A stretch of DNA of 63,619 nucleotides, filler included, from Pelomyxa schiedti (lineage: Eukaryota > Protista > Evosea), in NCBI GenBank assembly GCA_020536535.1. It is 13 parts of 13 records of this genome, joined end to end, with 100 filler letters (N's around TTAATTAATTAA, not from the genome) between each part and the next. Parts side by side here need not be neighbours in the genome. Positions count along the whole stretch, not along the records: positions 3,978 to 30,116 come from JAHLWZ010000463.1; 12 more parts are not named here. The stretch is one strand, 5' to 3'. Below are positions 3,978-18,493 of this stretch, one piece after another (positions within the stretch are counted from its first letter, which is position 1; each line of letters begins with the position of its first letter). A program made the position numbers and the translations under genes. The notes below the pieces were generated by a model. It saw only the letters and a program-made list of their open reading frames with translations. It did not search any database and had not been told where the DNA came from.

Positions 3978-4483
3978 ACGAAAACAAGTCCCAGAAACAA
4001 AAAGCAGAAGAAGACACAATGCCTCAAAGTCATTATCAACACTTGTTGTTGCTGTGGCAGTGAAACCATAATTGAAAAGGGCCTTGAGTACATATGACCG
4101 ATGCTTGAACAACTTGGGGTGGCCCAACCCAATGCACTTCACCTCAAACCCAATCTCTGTCATGTTTGTATGTCTGTTAAGGTCCCATACAGAAAAAGAA
4201 AAAAAAAAAGTGGCACTCCCCCACCCCGCCCAGTGCTATGATTTGGTTGAATCACACACGCACCGTCGCACCCTTGTGAGGTCACTCTCACGAGCCTGAA
4301 GTTTGATGCCACGACCACGCTCCCCTCGGCTGTGTTTTGCACGTTGGTGTTTTGCACGTTGTCGACTGTGGCCGACCGCCCCAGCCTCCCGAAGAAAGCG
4401 TCACGCTCACGAATCGCGCTCTGAAACTCATAGCGGCCACCAGCAAGGTCCGACGACGTGGTGGTTGTGTTGTTGTTCCCCAT
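3978..4483 (-). CDS. 5' exons of a duplicate kinase-N-lobe gene (copy of 9191-11606), cut by the contig end
   Basis: Near-identical to 11110-11606: MGNN..., FRLVRVTSQGCD, YVLKALFNYG. Confidence 0.65.
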
Positions 4484-4617
4484 TTCCCCCCCCCCCCCCC
4501 CCCCCCTTTTTTTTTTTTTTTTGCTTTGATGGTTGGGTGTCAGACACCTGCGAAAGTGTGTGTTCGTCAAGAGACTGAGACGCCATCAGTCCCCCAGATC
4601 AATCAAAAAAAAGGAGG

Positions 4618-4959
4618 ATGAAGCATCACGAAGACGACAACGCCGACTACTGCCTTTCGGCACGAGACCAATTCGTAGCGCTTGGTTGTGCATTATGGGT
4701 GCCACGATGCACAACGGATGGGACAGCAACAATGGAATTGCACAACGCCAATGAGGAGTCATGGAAGGATCATCAGAATCAACCAGAGAGGGTGTTTGAT
4801 GTCAGTGGCTACCAGGGACATTTCAATGACCAAATGTGCCACAATGGGTTTGTTGTGCTGGTTGGAGAGTCACACGTGGACCTTGTTGATGCTTTGACTG
4901 GCACGTGGATTATGCGCCAGCGACTTCATCTCCACAGCTCATTCCGGTTGCATGGATGA
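4618..4959 (+). pseudogene. ARDQF-family gene with an in-frame internal deletion of about 0.8 kb
   Basis: The N-terminus (SARDQFVALGCALWVPRC) is joined directly to the C-terminus (TMELHNANEE...) of the 11730-12868 paralog. Confidence 0.75.
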
Positions 4960-5126
4960 ATGCCATGGCATCAAATACAATGAAAACAAGTTTGAGGTGC
5001 GTTACTAGTAGATTGAGACCCTCAACGTTGGAGAAAAAAAAATTCTTTCCGAAGGAATGAAGATTGATGATGATCTGATCTTTACGGAAAAAATAACAAA
5101 AGAGACGCACGGTGGCTGTGGACAAC

Positions 5127-5592
5127 ATGGCATTGTGGGACGGTAGGTTCGTCGTGGAGTCGCTGCACGTCGGGGCCCTCGCCGCCAACTGCGTGTGCGT
5201 CGCCGACGTGGCCGAGGGCGTGGCCGCCATCTTCGACCCCGGCGACAACGCCCCCGCCATCGTCGACACGCTGCTGCGCCGCACCGTCGACCCCAAGATT
5301 ATGGGTGGCCGTGGCGCCGCCGACGCCGACGCGTCCGCTTCCCCGTCGGCGCCTTCTCCTCCCATAAGTGCGACTTCGGCTGCGACCACTGCGGCGTCGA
5401 CCGCCGCGACGGCAGCGAACACCGCGGCTGTCCCACAATCGCAAAACCAGCATGCCGAACCGTCGCCAAAATGCGATGGCGTGAGGGTTCGTGTTGTTAT
5501 GATTGTGCTGACACATTCACATATGGACCACTGTTTGGCTGTGCCCCAGTTGAAAAAGATGTTCCCTGATGCAAAGGCAAGGTTTCACTTTT
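5127..5592 (+). CDS. MBL-fold metallo-hydrolase, first exon of the duplicate copy (cut by gap)
   Basis: DPGD and THSHMDH motifs; near-identical to 13042-13510. Confidence 0.8.
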
Positions 5593-5692
5593 NNNNNNNN
5601 NNNNNNNNNNNNNNNNNNNNNNNNNNNNNNNNNNNNNNNNNNNNNNNNNNNNNNNNNNNNNNNNNNNNNNNNNNNNNNNNNNNNNNNNNNNN

Positions 5693-12868: not shown

Positions 12869-13041
12869 ATGCCATGGCATCAAATACAATAAGAAAACAA
12901 GTTTGAGGTGGGGCACTTTGTTGACTATTGAATTGTTGACACCTCACCCTAACCCTAGGTTGGAGAACAACAATTCTTCCCGATGATCATCTTTAGAAGA
13001 AGAAAAAATAACCAAATCTTCGCACGGTGGCTGTGGGCAAC

Positions 13042-14198
13042 ATGGCATTGTGGGACGGTAGGTTCGTCGTGGAGTCGCTGCGCGTCGGGGCCCTCGCCGC
13101 CAACTGCGTGTGCGTCGCCGACGTGGCCGAGGGCGTGGCCGCCATCTTCGACCCCGGCGACAACGCCCCCGCCATCGTCGACACCCTGCTGCGCCGCACC
13201 GTCGACCCCAAGATTATGGGTGGCCGTGGCGCCGCCGCCGCCGACGCGTCCGCTTCCCCGTCGGCGCCTTCTCCTCCCATAAGTGCGACTTCGGCTGCTA
13301 CCACCGCGGCGTCGACCGCCGCGACGGCAGCAAACACCGCGGCTGTCCCACAATCGCAAAACCAGCAAGCCGAACCGTCGCCAAACTGCGATGGCGTGAG
13401 GGTTCGTGTTGTTATGATTGTGCTGACACATTCACATATGGACCACTGTTTGGCTGTGCCCCAGTTGAAAAAGATGTTCCCTGATGCAAAGGCAAGGTTT
13501 CACTTTTCCTTTTTTTTGTTTCGGTTCTTTTGTTACTGCTATATTACTTCCGCGGGATATGAAATGCCTGGAAAGAAACAAAAACCTTTCTATTCATTGT
13601 GCTTATCTTTGACACAGATTGTTATGCATCCAAATGATGTGGCTATGTATAATGTACGCCTCTCTTTCATCTAGAAAATGTTGCTTCTTTCTTGTTCTAA
13701 TTATTCCATAGATTGTTCCGCTGCAGTGCATGCTCTTTGGAATGCCCCCGCCGGAAGGCAATATGATGCCGCCAATGGAAGTTTCCTTGGCAGACCAGAT
13801 GGACTTGGAGATTTCCTCCGGCCTCAAAGCAAAAGTTTTACATACACCAGGGCATTCCCCAGGTTCAGTCTGTTTCTACTTCCCAGAGGTAATTGAACTC
13901 CGGTTTATTTTTCCAATCCAACAAACACACAACAGCTTAACAGGCTTCTTTCTGGAGACACACTTTTTCAGGGCTCTGTTGGCAGGACTGATTTACCAGG
14001 TGGTGATATGAATGCTCTCTCCACATCCATTAAAGGTAAACTCTTACCACTACCGGACTCCACCATAGTTATTCCTGGGTATGTTCTCCACTCTGGAATA
14101 ATTTAAAACCGCTAAGCACAACAAGGCACGGGGACATAACAACTGTAGGCCAGGAGAAGTCCTCAAATCCTTTTGTCCAATACATGGCCAAACTTTGA
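13042..14198 (+). CDS. MBL-fold metallo-hydrolase, glyoxalase II/YcbL-like (exons 13042-13491, 13618-13653, 13712-13888, 13936-14078, 14126-14198)
   Basis: The spliced product has all motifs in order: [55 protein letters not shown]. Confidence 0.9.
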
Positions 14199-14271: not shown

Positions 14272-15936
14272 TTATCTAAACAAAATAGAGTATTCCCTCG
14301 TAGAGGCACCAAAGCGTAGTGAATCGCCATGAGCCAAAGGGTAATACTCAGAAGGTACAAGGGCAGTGCCATTCAACTGTGTTCCATTAGTACTGCCAAG
14401 GTCCACGATCGCGGGTCTATAAAAGAGGAGATCGATAAAGGCTTCCACATAGGTGATGGAAGTTACGTTGGGATTTTGTGGCCCTCTGCCGGTTCAAACT
14501 TGATTTTTGCATGAACTTTGCTGCAGCTTGGATGTGCTAATTCAATGTCACTCTGTGGTATCGCGTTAATTGCGGAATTGAATTTATGGGAGTGGAACCT
14601 CCGGGTCCCGCCCAAATTTAAAAACTTTGGTGGGGTCAAGGTATGTCTGTGCTGGAAGGTGTTAGTATAAAAGGAATGAAAAAGAAGGCATAAAACCGAT
14701 GGTTGCTCCATCTTTAGTGATGACCAGGAACCAGCCTCTGTTGCCGTTGTGTTCATCATCTGGGTCCTCCTTCCCAGCTCTGCGTAATTCCTTTCTGCGT
14801 TCCATTTCTTCCTTATCGTGCTTTATTCTTTCTTCTCTAGCACTAGCCTCTCGGGCTTCTTGTTGTTTTCGAATACGCTCCGCTTCATGCAGCACTTTCT
14901 ATAAGAGACTATAAGTACTGGTAAGTGCCTTATCTTTGGCTTTGTGATTTAGTTGTTTGGTTCGGATCGCCTTACATCTTTTTCTCTATCAAGAATGGTT
15001 TCCAGCATTATGTCCTTGTATGAGCGTGTGTCTTCCACAGGCCGTGCTGGTGCTGGTGGCACTGGAGCCGGTTCTGCTTTCTGTAGTTAAAACAGAGAGT
15101 AAATGGTAAATTGAATGTAGAGAGGGGCAAACATCATGGCGTTGTCTGCCCTTTTTAGGAGCTGTGGCAACTGGTTCCGGTTCATTTGGATCCTTTTTGA
15201 GATACAAAGTGAATGGATCCTTTTTAGGGGGAGACATCTTGCGTTTCCTCCACTGGGCTCGGTATTCGCCCTCTCTTTCTGCAATGGTTGGCCTCTTTGG
15301 TACCTGGGAGGAACAAGAAGGTAACAGTTATCACATGCAGTTTAGGACATACAACTGTTTCAGCATCAGCACCAGGTATCTCTCTGAAGAATTGAGATGG
15401 AGCAGTATATGACGGCAAAGCAGCCTTATCTCTCTTCCTGGATACAGAGTTTTAAGTGTATTGATAATGATGGATTTAATAGTTATAAACTAGAGCAAGT
15501 ATAGGAGCCCAGAAGAAAATGAAATAGTGGGCAGGTAGTTTACGGAATGAGTGGGTCTGGATCCTCCTCGTCGTCAGCAGTGCTAATTGATAGGTTTATT
15601 TTGTCAGTGTCTTCTGCCTCGTACAGAAAAGAATCATATCCCTTCCCATCCCCAATTCCAAACCCAACCTGAAAATTGCATTTAAAAAATGTTACCTTTA
15701 CCACCTGAAAATAAACAAACAAAAAAATAAATCTAGAAATAACGAAATAAAGACACCAACAACAACAACGGGACGCGCACCAGGCCGAGTTCGCGTTTTT
15801 TCCTCTGGTCCTGCAGTTGCTTAATTTCTGCGGCACACGACTCGGAATCTAACGCCGCCACCCCACTCGACGTCGCGCTCGTAGTGGTGCTCGTGTTCGT
15901 GCTCGAACTTACGCCCCCGCCCCCTGGTCGAGACAT
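14272..15936 (-). CDS. SF3B1-N-terminal-like region fused to a SNIP1/NIPP1-like FHA domain (9 exons: 15936-15781, 15668-15544, 15437-15353, 15303-15133, 15080-14976, 14898-14697, 14651-14599, 14552-14467, 14416-14272)
   Basis: All introns are GT-AG and phase-compatible. SF3B1-like blocks: YDSFLY, SYTAP..FREIP, TIAEREGEY, MSPPKKDPF, RSYKDIM. FHA motifs: FKFGR, HPSCSKVHA, VDLGSTNGT, LRFGASTREY. Confidence 0.85.
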
Positions 15937-16082
15937 TTTAATTGTTTGTTGTGTAGCCCGAAAAATCTGGCTGCACACTCAAAGTAATACATGAAATGAG
16001 GGTTCTCACCTGGAGAACCACGTCTCTGGGCACAGAGGAAGGCTGGGTGTTCAAAGAAGAAAGACCCCGGGATCACAAGAAG

Positions 16083-18493
16083 ATGAAGTTCGCGGAACGT
16101 CCGAGTGACGTTGTACCTACGCCCACAATGCAGTCTTGCAAGGCTACAACTTCGACGTTGAAGGAATCAGCGCTGGCGATGCCGATGCATGCGGCTACGA
16201 CGCCGGCGGCCTCGAGGGGATCGCCGTGCACGGCGCTCTCGTCGCGGGCGTCGTGGGTGCTGCAGGTGTCGCGGGCCGTGTGGGAGCTCGTGGTGGTGCC
16301 GCTGGTCGTCGCCCCGCGCGTCGCCCGCGGCGTGTGCCTCACCTCCCGCAAGAGCACGTGGCTCGCCGGCCTCGCCGACGCCCTGTTCCCCCTCGTCCCC
16401 AGGGTCTGCCGCGCCATCCTCCTCGCCACTGCTTGCGACGGCGACTGCGACGACGACGGATGCGGGGGGAGCGGGCGCGCGAGGGGGGATAATGGGACCG
16501 GGCGCCGCCGAGGGGGTTGTGGCCACGGCGACGGGGTGATGGCGGATCTGGCTTGCTGCTGGACGTCGCACACGTCGAGGTATTATGGGTTGGAGTGCGC
16601 GGCGAGGGCTGGGAGCGTGAGGTGCGCGGAGTGGATTGTGGGGAAAATGGTGCGTCCCACAATGAGGAACAACAGGAAGGAATGCATTTCTGTGCTGAAG
16701 GGCCTGTGTGCCGGTAAGTATTACTCACTTATTCAATTCCATTCCGTTATGCTGTATCAGAATATATTGAATAAAAAATAAACTTTCAATAGAATTGTAT
16801 GAAAAATTAAAATTTAACAGTCTATAAATAGGCGGGCATGTTGCCATGGCACAGGAACTTGTTGGTAGTGTTGATAGACCATGGAGGGGAGGCCTCCTAA
16901 AGTGGCCGGCAAATGACCCTGACTTGCTGGATGATATGCGGAGCGCAACTGACTCTAGTTCACACTGCAGCCTCCTGTGGAGTGCATGTGAAGGTGGCCA
17001 CCTTGAGGCTGTCAAGTGGGTGATGTCAAGGTTTGGTGTTGGAAGGGAGGTGTGGGAGGTTGTGGCTCCATTCCAGGCTGCACTGAGAAAGGGCAATGTT
17101 AAAGTTGTAAAGTGGTTGGCATGCTCCACTGGTGTTGTTGGGTCTGGACAGGCAGTGTTCACCACTCCGCATCACTGTCATCCTGGTGATTTCTTGGAGG
17201 TTGTGAAGCTCTGCATGGGGTGGTTCCCTGAGCAAAAGAGAGGCACATTTGAGGAAGGGAATATGATACTGCACAGATTTATTCACTGCTGCTGCTCACA
17301 AAATGCTCCCCACATGCTTCTAGAAGGTTGCCAGTGGCTCAAGGAAACATTGTCAATTACACAAATGCGTTCCCTGGAATACATTACAAATAAAACAGCT
17401 TTTCAGTGGGCAATTGAAACCTTCTCTGTCTCACCAACACAGCAGATTCTGTGCGGCATATGTAGAAATGGTGCCGAGAAGGAGCTGGTGCAGTGGTACC
17501 TTCAGACCTTTGCACCTAGTATTGGGCCTATTGCTCCAGAGACCTTCATTGAAGCATGTGGCAAAACTACTGTGTCAGTGCTGAAGTTACTGTTACCAAC
17601 AACTCCACCTCTCACAGTAGACAACCTCCAACAGGCACTTGAGAATTCCCTCAATGAGAACAGCATCATTACGGCAGCGTGGTTGGATGAGACATTTCAT
17701 GTGATGGAAAGTTTCAATGGAACCCCTACGAAGGTGAATTCAGTGTTCATTAACCTCTGCAGTCCCAGTGGTGTGAAATGGTTCCTATCTAAAGTGTCAC
17801 CACACAATATTAGCGAGAAAGCAGTGAGGAATGCTGTTCATCGCAGTGTGGATTCTCTTCACTTTGCAGTGACACTGTTTCTACTCAGGACATTCAATGT
17901 CTCAGTTACATTCCATCAAAAAGCTGCTATCAGGAGTGTTATTGAATGGGGGACCATCCAGCAAGCCAAGCAGATAATTTCACATGTTGTGTTCTCTTCA
18001 CCAGAAATGGCCACGTGTTTATCACTATGTGAGTGCATGCAGTCAAGCAAAACTGTAAGGTGGTTAATTCGGCATTTCCACTTGAATGAAGAACAAACCA
18101 AGATGAATGACAACCACCTTCTGCTCCTCCTGTTAAGGAACAACAAGAAAAAGTGTGCAGAGTGGTTAATCCACAAGTTCCACATAACATTTGATCAAGT
18201 ATGTTATACTTCCAGGCACAACTTTCACTAACTCTCTCCACCCCCCTTTTTTTTTTTGATTGTTTTTGATTGCCCTCAAGTTTACCAAAATGGTTACTAA
18301 GCACCACTTGGCAACCACAGGCCTGGAAACATGGAGAATGCTACTTTGTGTGTACCCTGAAATGACCGCCGAGTTTGTCAAGACACACCTGATGAGCTGC
18401 ATTGTGGGAACACCCTTGCACAAACAACTAGCGATACGGAGATTTGGGCTCTCTCCTGATGACTGGTTGTTGTACGATTTTGATTCCCTCTAA
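16083..18493 (+). CDS. Degenerate ankyrin-like helical repeat protein (introns 16714-16831 and 18199-18280)
   Basis: ACEGGHLEAVKWV and ALRKGNVKVVKWL motifs; phase-compatible GT-AG introns join three ORFs. The start could instead be 15996. Confidence 0.8.

Follow-up and report, generated by a model that had tools for sequence, protein, structure and literature searches.

A predicted Pelomyxa protein that joins an SF3B1-like N-terminal module to a SNIP1-type FHA domain

SF3B1 (also SF3b155 or Hsh155) carries a C-terminal solenoid of 20 HEAT repeats, and NIPP1 (PPP1R8) is an FHA protein that binds phosphorylated SF3B1. Here we describe a minus-strand gene (15936..14272) in a 63,619-nucleotide stretch of DNA from the archamoeba Pelomyxa schiedti, referred to below as the window. 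This gene is predicted to encode a protein with an SF3B1-like N-terminal half and a C-terminal SNIP1-type FHA domain. SNIP1's FHA domain binds paired phospho-Thr-Pro (phospho-TP) motifs of SF3B1 and recruits the RES (retention and splicing) complex in activation (PMC13194972). The SNIP1 substitutions K265G and K301G abolish binding to CDK11-phosphorylated SF3B1, R365G weakens it roughly threefold, and E366G, a disease variant, is also weaker (PMC13194972). Yeast Pml1 binds Snu17 through a peptide (residues 22-42) that lies six residues before its FHA domain (PMC4515762). The N-terminus of SF3B1 was described as disordered with short helices; in an early activation intermediate, human residues 30-100 dock on the reverse transcriptase-like (RT) domain of PRP8 at about residues 1400-1500, and residues ~90-104 were fitted on this domain (PMC13332222). 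The same human RT site has PRP6, the SF3B1 N-terminus and SKIP as mutually exclusive ligands (PMC13332222).

The window protein resembles SNIP1, DDL and Pml1 in that its C-terminal FHA domain belongs to their subtype, with the same phospho-SF3B1-binding residues and three introns in common with Pelomyxa SNIP1, and like SNIP1-type proteins it ends a few residues past the ..STREY.. strand. Unlike SNIP1, it has neither the pre-FHA segment nor the Arg/Asp-rich N-terminus, and an SF3B1-like region stands in their place. It did not group with the canonical SNIP1s (98/99 branch) and it is not the SNIP1 of this genome, which is encoded on contig C858. With SF3B1 it shares five colinear motifs and their helices, the first intron of Pelomyxa SF3B1, and disorder interspersed with short helices; however, it has 375 residues compared with ~1100-1300 and lacks the TP/SP repeats, the U2AF ligand motifs (ULMs), the p14/SF3B6 site and the HEAT solenoid. 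The FHA domain of NIPP1 is related (E = 1.5e-10), but it is N-terminal and followed by PP1-binding, RNA-binding and C-terminal regulatory parts, whereas that of the window protein is C-terminal and nearer to SNIP1. In KAL0484986.1 of Acrasis kona, KAJ4456655.1 of Paratrimastix pyriformis and a protein of Heterolobosea sp. BB2, an SF3B1-like module is likewise followed by a charged helix and then by an FHA domain of SNIP1 type. The heterolobosean forms keep a complete SNIP1 core with P-N-F..S-G-K-L, in contrast to the window protein, which is of a shorter, amoebozoan type.

The two halves of the protein

The gene model comprises nine exons separated by eight introns of 45-112 nt, all GT..AG and all compatible in phase, and the 1128-nt coding sequence gives 375 residues and a stop codon. 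A large protein database search with exon 4 as the sole query retrieved a 375-residue protein (P0001) that is 100% identical in full to this model: KAH3762349.1, "hypothetical protein Pelo_5810" of P. schiedti, encoded on a 26,139-nt contig. The original prediction had proposed nine phase-compatible exons encoding the blocks EIKQLQ, YDSFLY, SYTAP..FREIP, TIAEREGEY, SPPKKDPF and RSYKDIM, then a charged helix and a full FHA domain; the exons agreed with the public protein, all six blocks were present in the order given, and the helix and the FHA domain were both recovered. Residues ~30-215 form a predicted disordered chain that carries short motifs for docking together with helices, followed by the long charged helix and by the FHA domain at residues 267-375. 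In the AlphaFold2 model, helices were placed at residues 31-52, 129-143 and 200-254 with disorder between them, and the FHA sandwich (267-375) was confident.

At the level of sequence, homology of the N-terminal half to SF3B1 is established, because a profile made from family members alone matched both human SF3B1 and 55 of 80 environmental SF3B1 loci. The underlying alignment (A2) held only the N-terminal halves of P0001 and 12 relatives (n = 13). Searched against all PDB sequences, the profile matched residues 9-171 of human SF3B1 with E = 5.4e-28 (101.6 bits), colinear across profile positions 3-169 (167 of 170 positions), as predicted originally for the first ~170 residues of SF3B1. The sole other PDB match was yeast Hsh155 (residues 11-67, E = 0.14). 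As an independent check, the 80 environmental loci were gathered with a HEAT-repeat exon as query; the 55 matches reached at least 25 bits and lay upstream of the HEAT domain, always on its strand and often within its open reading frame (ORF). A metagenome scan with the SF3B1 p14-site exon gave zero loci.

The elements common to the family and SF3B1 are the N-terminal helix (EI..Q), FG..YD..LYG with an acidic run, SYTAP..L..IP, DPF..KRKT.AEREDEYRARWRKRKLSPP..DPF, and RTY.D.M.E..LEKE leading into a helix. Exon 1 aligned to family-profile positions 3-22, the counterpart of human SF3B1 from residue 9. Taken singly against PDB sequences, exons 3, 4 and 5 did not reach SF3B1 at E ≤ 10; the significance comes from the family profile. 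Pfam found no family in exons 1-6 singly or in the first 290 residues of the whole protein, and a word search with alignment A2 returned only the query protein. The Pfam and motif scans also bore out the expected absence of the remaining SF3B1 parts. A single TP, located within the FHA domain, and a single SP occur in the window protein, and RWD/RWE is absent; PF08920 (p14/SF3B6-binding) was matched neither by single exons nor by the whole protein; and there is no HEAT solenoid, as the chain stops at residue 375 straight after the FHA domain.

Two further sequences related to this module were observed. In the environmental SF3B1 locus L045 (560-720), from an A+T-rich organism, a frameshift in an A11 run separates the N-terminal module from the ULM region, and the break is probably an assembly error. 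We considered the upstream part as a separate N-terminal ORF and rejected this, as the locus is a canonical SF3B1 frameshifted in the A11 run; its module was the top scorer among SF3B1s against the family profile (113 bits). P0005, a short predicted protein (75 aa) on a Logan contig, contains two tandem DPF..EDEY..SPE..DPF units of the SF3B1 N-terminal region.

Judged by alignment, the C-terminal half is an FHA domain of SNIP1 type in which the residues required by SNIP1 for phospho-SF3B1 binding are retained. In the whole protein, Pfam PF00498 matched residues 293-364 (E = 1.7e-17; 64.1 bits, cut-off 20.7). Among solved relatives of residues 255-375, Arabidopsis DDL ranked first (6.5e-17), followed by human SNIP1 (5.7e-14) and NIPP1 (1.5e-10), and kanadaptin was also matched. 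The AlphaFold2 model showed nine strands over residues 270-374 in a beta-sandwich, with a predicted local distance difference test score mostly above 90. In an alignment of 17 family members, G295, S310, H313 and N338 of the phosphothreonine pocket were invariant and R296 nearly invariant. K276, K311, R368 and E369 aligned with SNIP1 K265, K301, R365 and E366, respectively; K276 and R368 were invariant and E369 nearly so, and in P0011, P0013, P0015 and P0016 a Ser or Gly stands at the K311 position. The SNIP1 pre-FHA segment (human residues 221-248) was absent from P0001 and from all short forms in the alignment. Its position is that of the Pml1 peptide that binds Snu17/RBMX2.

Family distribution and origin in Pelomyxa

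The exon-4 search and two word searches gave a family of proteins of 267-491 residues with the same layout, both halves being present in 19 of the 134 proteins fetched. The named members belong to Pelomyxa, Paradermamoeba, Physarum, Paratrimastix, Acrasis kona and Heterolobosea sp. BB2. Short forms (module, helix and FHA domain in ~300-375 residues) were observed in Pelomyxa, Paradermamoeba levis and Physarum polycephalum, all Amoebozoa, and on several transcript-sized contigs; the architecture thus extends beyond Pelomyxa within Amoebozoa, as the original prediction had asked, and into other protist lineages. Paratrimastix pyriformis (Metamonada) has a 382-residue form and a separate canonical SNIP1. 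Long forms, which hold the whole SNIP1 core including the P-N-F..S-G-K-L segment, were found in Acrasis kona, in Heterolobosea sp. BB2 and on one further genomic contig. In the relatives, a single gene product certainly carries both halves: on a 22.7-kb genomic contig, one unbroken, intronless ORF of 1227 nt encodes the long form P0018, and five other members each occupy one ORF on mRNA-sized contigs of 1-1.5 kb.

In the FHA tree, a branch with 98/99 support parted 13 short forms from the canonical SNIP1s, and the long forms and the Paratrimastix form fell among the canonical SNIP1s, without a resolved position there. The backbone of the module tree (family against SF3B1) was not resolved either, and it bears neither way on a single origin of the FHA-linked modules. 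In databases the members are labelled hypothetical, FHA domain-containing or SNIP1; for example, KAL0484986.1 of Acrasis kona is an "FHA domain-containing protein" and KAJ4456655.1 of Paratrimastix pyriformis a "putative SNIP1". Our literature search found no paper on the combination of an SF3B1 N-terminal module with an FHA domain, which apparently represents a conserved, undescribed family. One member from ENA, P0009 (314 aa), has the module followed by Cys/Leu-rich sequence in place of the helix and FHA domain, and is probably a frameshifted or mis-spliced model.

The sole PF08920 match of the 52-Mb Pelomyxa assembly lies on contig C857 and marks the canonical SF3B1 (4296-5642 of locus L002 and onward). 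This gene starts with a 7-codon first exon, followed by ..FGSAAGGYDADVYSG.. and an acidic run (motif 2, FG..GYD..VY). Next come Ser-rich and Arg/Asp-rich low-complexity stretches, five RWD/EWD motifs and 15 TP dipeptides (one TP-X11-TP), followed by the p14 site and the HEAT repeats. N-terminal motifs 1, 3, 4 and 5 are missing from it. The distance from the end of a same-strand gene upstream to its start codon is ~400 nt, too short to conceal further exons. When the N-terminal profile was run against the whole assembly, it found only the exons of the window gene (57.3 bits for exon 4 alone) and no second copy of the module. Motif 2 is therefore the only N-terminal motif held by both the window gene and the canonical SF3B1. 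The canonical SNIP1 that the original prediction advised looking for is present on contig C858 (locus L005, ~21-1755, +), with a long (RD/RE)n N-terminus, an FHA domain and a pre-FHA segment that aligned to human SNIP1 221-268 (E = 7.8e-10).

The introns tie the window gene to both of these genes. The three introns within the FHA region, after exons 6, 7 and 8, are in phases 1, 0 and 2, respectively, and are identical in position and phase to three introns of the canonical Pelomyxa SNIP1. For the first of them the match needs a gapless register: in both proteins, 12 residues separate the conserved Trp from the split codon and 12 more lead to FGRD. The match with Pelomyxa SF3B1 concerns intron 1, which in both genes is a phase-0 intron placed two residues ahead of the FG motif. 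Because of these common positions and phases, the sequence points to a chimera of a duplicated SF3B1 5' end and a duplicated FHA part of SNIP1, and to a later stage at which SF3B1 itself lost most of its N-terminal region.

The Rosetta-stone fusion of the original prediction is supported by the match to SF3B1 residues 9-171, the SNIP1-type FHA domain and the single ORF in relatives. Neither outcome that it had named as refuting came about: the profile match to SF3B1 is strong, and two separate transcripts were not indicated. Its second option, an SF3B1 split between two genes and lacking its N-terminus, stood in part and for this genome only: four of the five motifs are gone from the canonical gene and no other copy of the module was found, but motif 2 is kept there as well as in the window gene, which argues for duplication and partial loss rather than a clean split. 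Its third option, a decoy splicing regulator, may yet hold. Another possibility is that module and SNIP1 together, as in Heterolobosea, represent the ancestral state, with later transfer of the module to SF3B1 in other groups.

Proposed role and competing explanations

We propose, with a probability of roughly 0.55, that the window gene encodes a spliceosomal accessory protein of 375 residues in which a trans-acting SF3B1 N-terminal module is tethered through the FHA domain to phosphorylated SF3B1 during activation. A CDK11-type kinase would phosphorylate the TP/ULM region of Pelomyxa SF3B1, and the FHA domain would then bind the paired phospho-Thr-Pro motifs. The docking motifs lost from the N-terminus of Pelomyxa SF3B1 would in this way be supplied in trans; in human SF3B1 they include the anchor on the PRP8 RT/linker region. 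The action would fall at the B-to-Bact step, next to the RES complex but separate from it; because the pre-FHA peptide is lacking and the genome has a canonical SNIP1, the protein is probably not part of RES. More tentatively, and with a good deal of doubt, the module may be delivered in trans only after phosphorylation, such that the FHA domain reads CDK11-type phospho-TP on a module-less SF3B1 and PRP8 anchoring follows. In the order proposed for human, PRP8 anchoring precedes and promotes SF3B1 phosphorylation. A complex prediction of residues 40-125 with two exons encoding the Pelomyxa PRP8 linker region gave a score of 0.00, which weighs neither way.

Several points weigh against the tethered accessory role. 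The exon joining in Pelomyxa comes from a gene model and a public hypothetical protein. We infer the binding of phospho-SF3B1 by the FHA domain, the docking of the module on PRP8 and the timing, and the first of these counts as a weakness. Partial loss of the N-terminal region from SF3B1 was read in the Pelomyxa genome alone among the fusion-bearing taxa. The environmental SF3B1 loci L015, L016 and L079 have complete N-termini with no trace of the module and with ULM-like motifs right at the start, and thus the module may be dispensable rather than relocated. Our literature search found no function for the best-conserved motif (human SF3B1 residues 100-171). Lastly, motif 2 is still on the canonical SF3B1 and is part of the human PRP8 anchor, so the two proteins could compete rather than cooperate. 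A fourth environmental locus, L013, has a complete or near-complete N-terminus and is probably module-less; it was the closest to Pelomyxa and, like Pelomyxa SF3B1, has an Arg/Asp-rich start. The module-less environmental SF3B1s and the family members had no sample in common.

Competition is the core of the main rival, since the cell has another protein with motif 2 and another with the same FHA specificity. The N-terminal motifs would block docking sites on PRP8 and elsewhere, or the FHA domain would block the phospho-TP sites of SNIP1/RES, and activation would be delayed or proofread. Such a brake is unlikely in our judgement. It fits the FG..GYD..Y and acidic motif found in both the canonical SF3B1 and the window protein, the agreement of the phospho-SF3B1-binding residues with those of the canonical SNIP1, and the exclusive occupancy of the human RT site (PMC13332222). 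However, all five N-terminal motifs are under strong constraint in a family conserved across very long evolutionary distances, and in Heterolobosea the module sits on an apparent SNIP1 orthologue, a location that suits a constructive role better than a pure decoy. The same heterolobosean long forms, with this tail on a full SNIP1 core including P-N-F..S-G-K-L, are what a divergent RES subunit would look like, that is, a second SNIP1 joining RBMX2 and BUD13 with the SF3B1-like part as an accessory tail. The SNIP1-type FHA domain and the SNIP1 labels given to relatives by several sources agree with it. We nevertheless regard it as improbable for the window protein: short forms are without the pre-FHA segment (human SNIP1 221-248, at the position of the Snu17-binding peptide Pml1 22-42; PMC4515762), this genome holds a canonical SNIP1 that has the segment, and the 98/99 branch lies between the FHA domains of the short forms and those of the canonical SNIP1s.

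There is very little chance that the protein is an artefact, either of two adjacent genes merged by the model or of short motifs that resemble SF3B1 by chance or convergence. The junctions at the Pelomyxa locus were read from genome sequence and single exons had no SF3B1 match in PDB, as such an artefact would allow. The eight introns are nevertheless short, GT-AG and in phase, with no space for a stop and restart, and at least six other contigs, one of them with an intronless genomic gene, carry the same architecture in an unbroken ORF. These ORFs refute a merged gene for the relatives. Chance resemblance is opposed by the profile match (E = 5.4e-28, 167 of 170 positions colinear) and by the 55 matches among 80 independent SF3B1 genes.

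Exon contents, neighbouring genes and significance

The exons and neighbouring features are listed in Table 1. The candidate micro-exon in intron 1 would add three residues in phase and is not used by the public 375-residue model. The neighbour gene showed a weak match to Lactamase_B (metallo-beta-lactamase fold; 22.2 bits, just below the cut-off) with an HTPGHSPGS motif, and has a long Ala/Thr/Ser-rich insert in its first coding block. The G+C-rich region may be the first exon of a divergent neighbour or a promoter island. No tRNA genes or Rfam families were found in the piece scanned.

Table 1. Exons of the window gene and nearby features (window coordinates)
Feature	Coordinates	Strand	Content
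Exon 1	15781..15936	-	M1-L52: start codon, Ser/Thr-rich low complexity, N-terminal helix with EIKQLQDQRKK (SF3B1 motif 1)
Exon 2	15544..15668	-	FGIGDGKGYDSFLY and acidic run (SF3B1 motif 2)
Exon 3	15353..15437	-	SYTAPSQFFREIP (SF3B1 motif 3); human counterpart ~residues 90-104
Exon 4	15133..15303	-	Best-conserved motif RPTIAEREGEYRAQWRKRKMSPPKKDPF (SF3B1 motif 4), with near-invariant Ser146-Pro
Exon 5	14976..15080	-	Pro/Ala-rich linker, then RSYKDIMLETILDREKD (SF3B1 motif 5), where the long helix begins
Exon 6	14697..14898	-	Charged helix to ~residue 254, linker, first FHA strands WFLVITKDGATI with K276
Exon 7	14599..14651	-	FHA strands to FGRDPE (phosphothreonine-pocket Gly-Arg)
Exon 8	14467..14552	-	FHA segment HPSCSKVHAKI (Ser310, Lys311, His313); Pfam FHA E = 0.003 alone
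Exon 9	14272..14416	-	FHA C-terminal half DLGSTNGT ... FGASTREYSILFR, stop codon; Pfam FHA E = 9e-9 alone
Candidate micro-exon	15696..15704	-	9 nt in phase (VVK), within intron 1, AG/GT on its sides
Neighbour gene	13027-14190	+	Convergent on the 3' end of the FHA gene
G+C-rich region	15996-16781	+	G+C 0.59 against ~0.47 around; long overlapping ORFs on both strands, no Pfam match

Two papers of 2026 reported that the SNIP1 FHA domain reads phospho-SF3B1 (PMC13194972) and that SF3B1 residues 30-100 anchor on PRP8 (PMC13332222); beyond this, little is understood of what the first 170 residues of SF3B1, which are disordered, do. The N-terminal region of SF3B1 is a separable module, because environmental SF3B1s with complete N-termini occur without it, and the family offers small, expressible proteins of ~300-375 residues for tests of motif binding. 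A conserved natural protein that holds both an SF3B1 N-terminal region and a SNIP1-type FHA domain is an independent indication from evolution that these elements act in concert. The indication is especially telling in a genome whose own SF3B1 has lost most of its N-terminal motifs, a natural experiment on spliceosome activation. If delivery of the module in trans after phosphorylation is true, the protists with this protein would have a rewired order of events in spliceosome activation.

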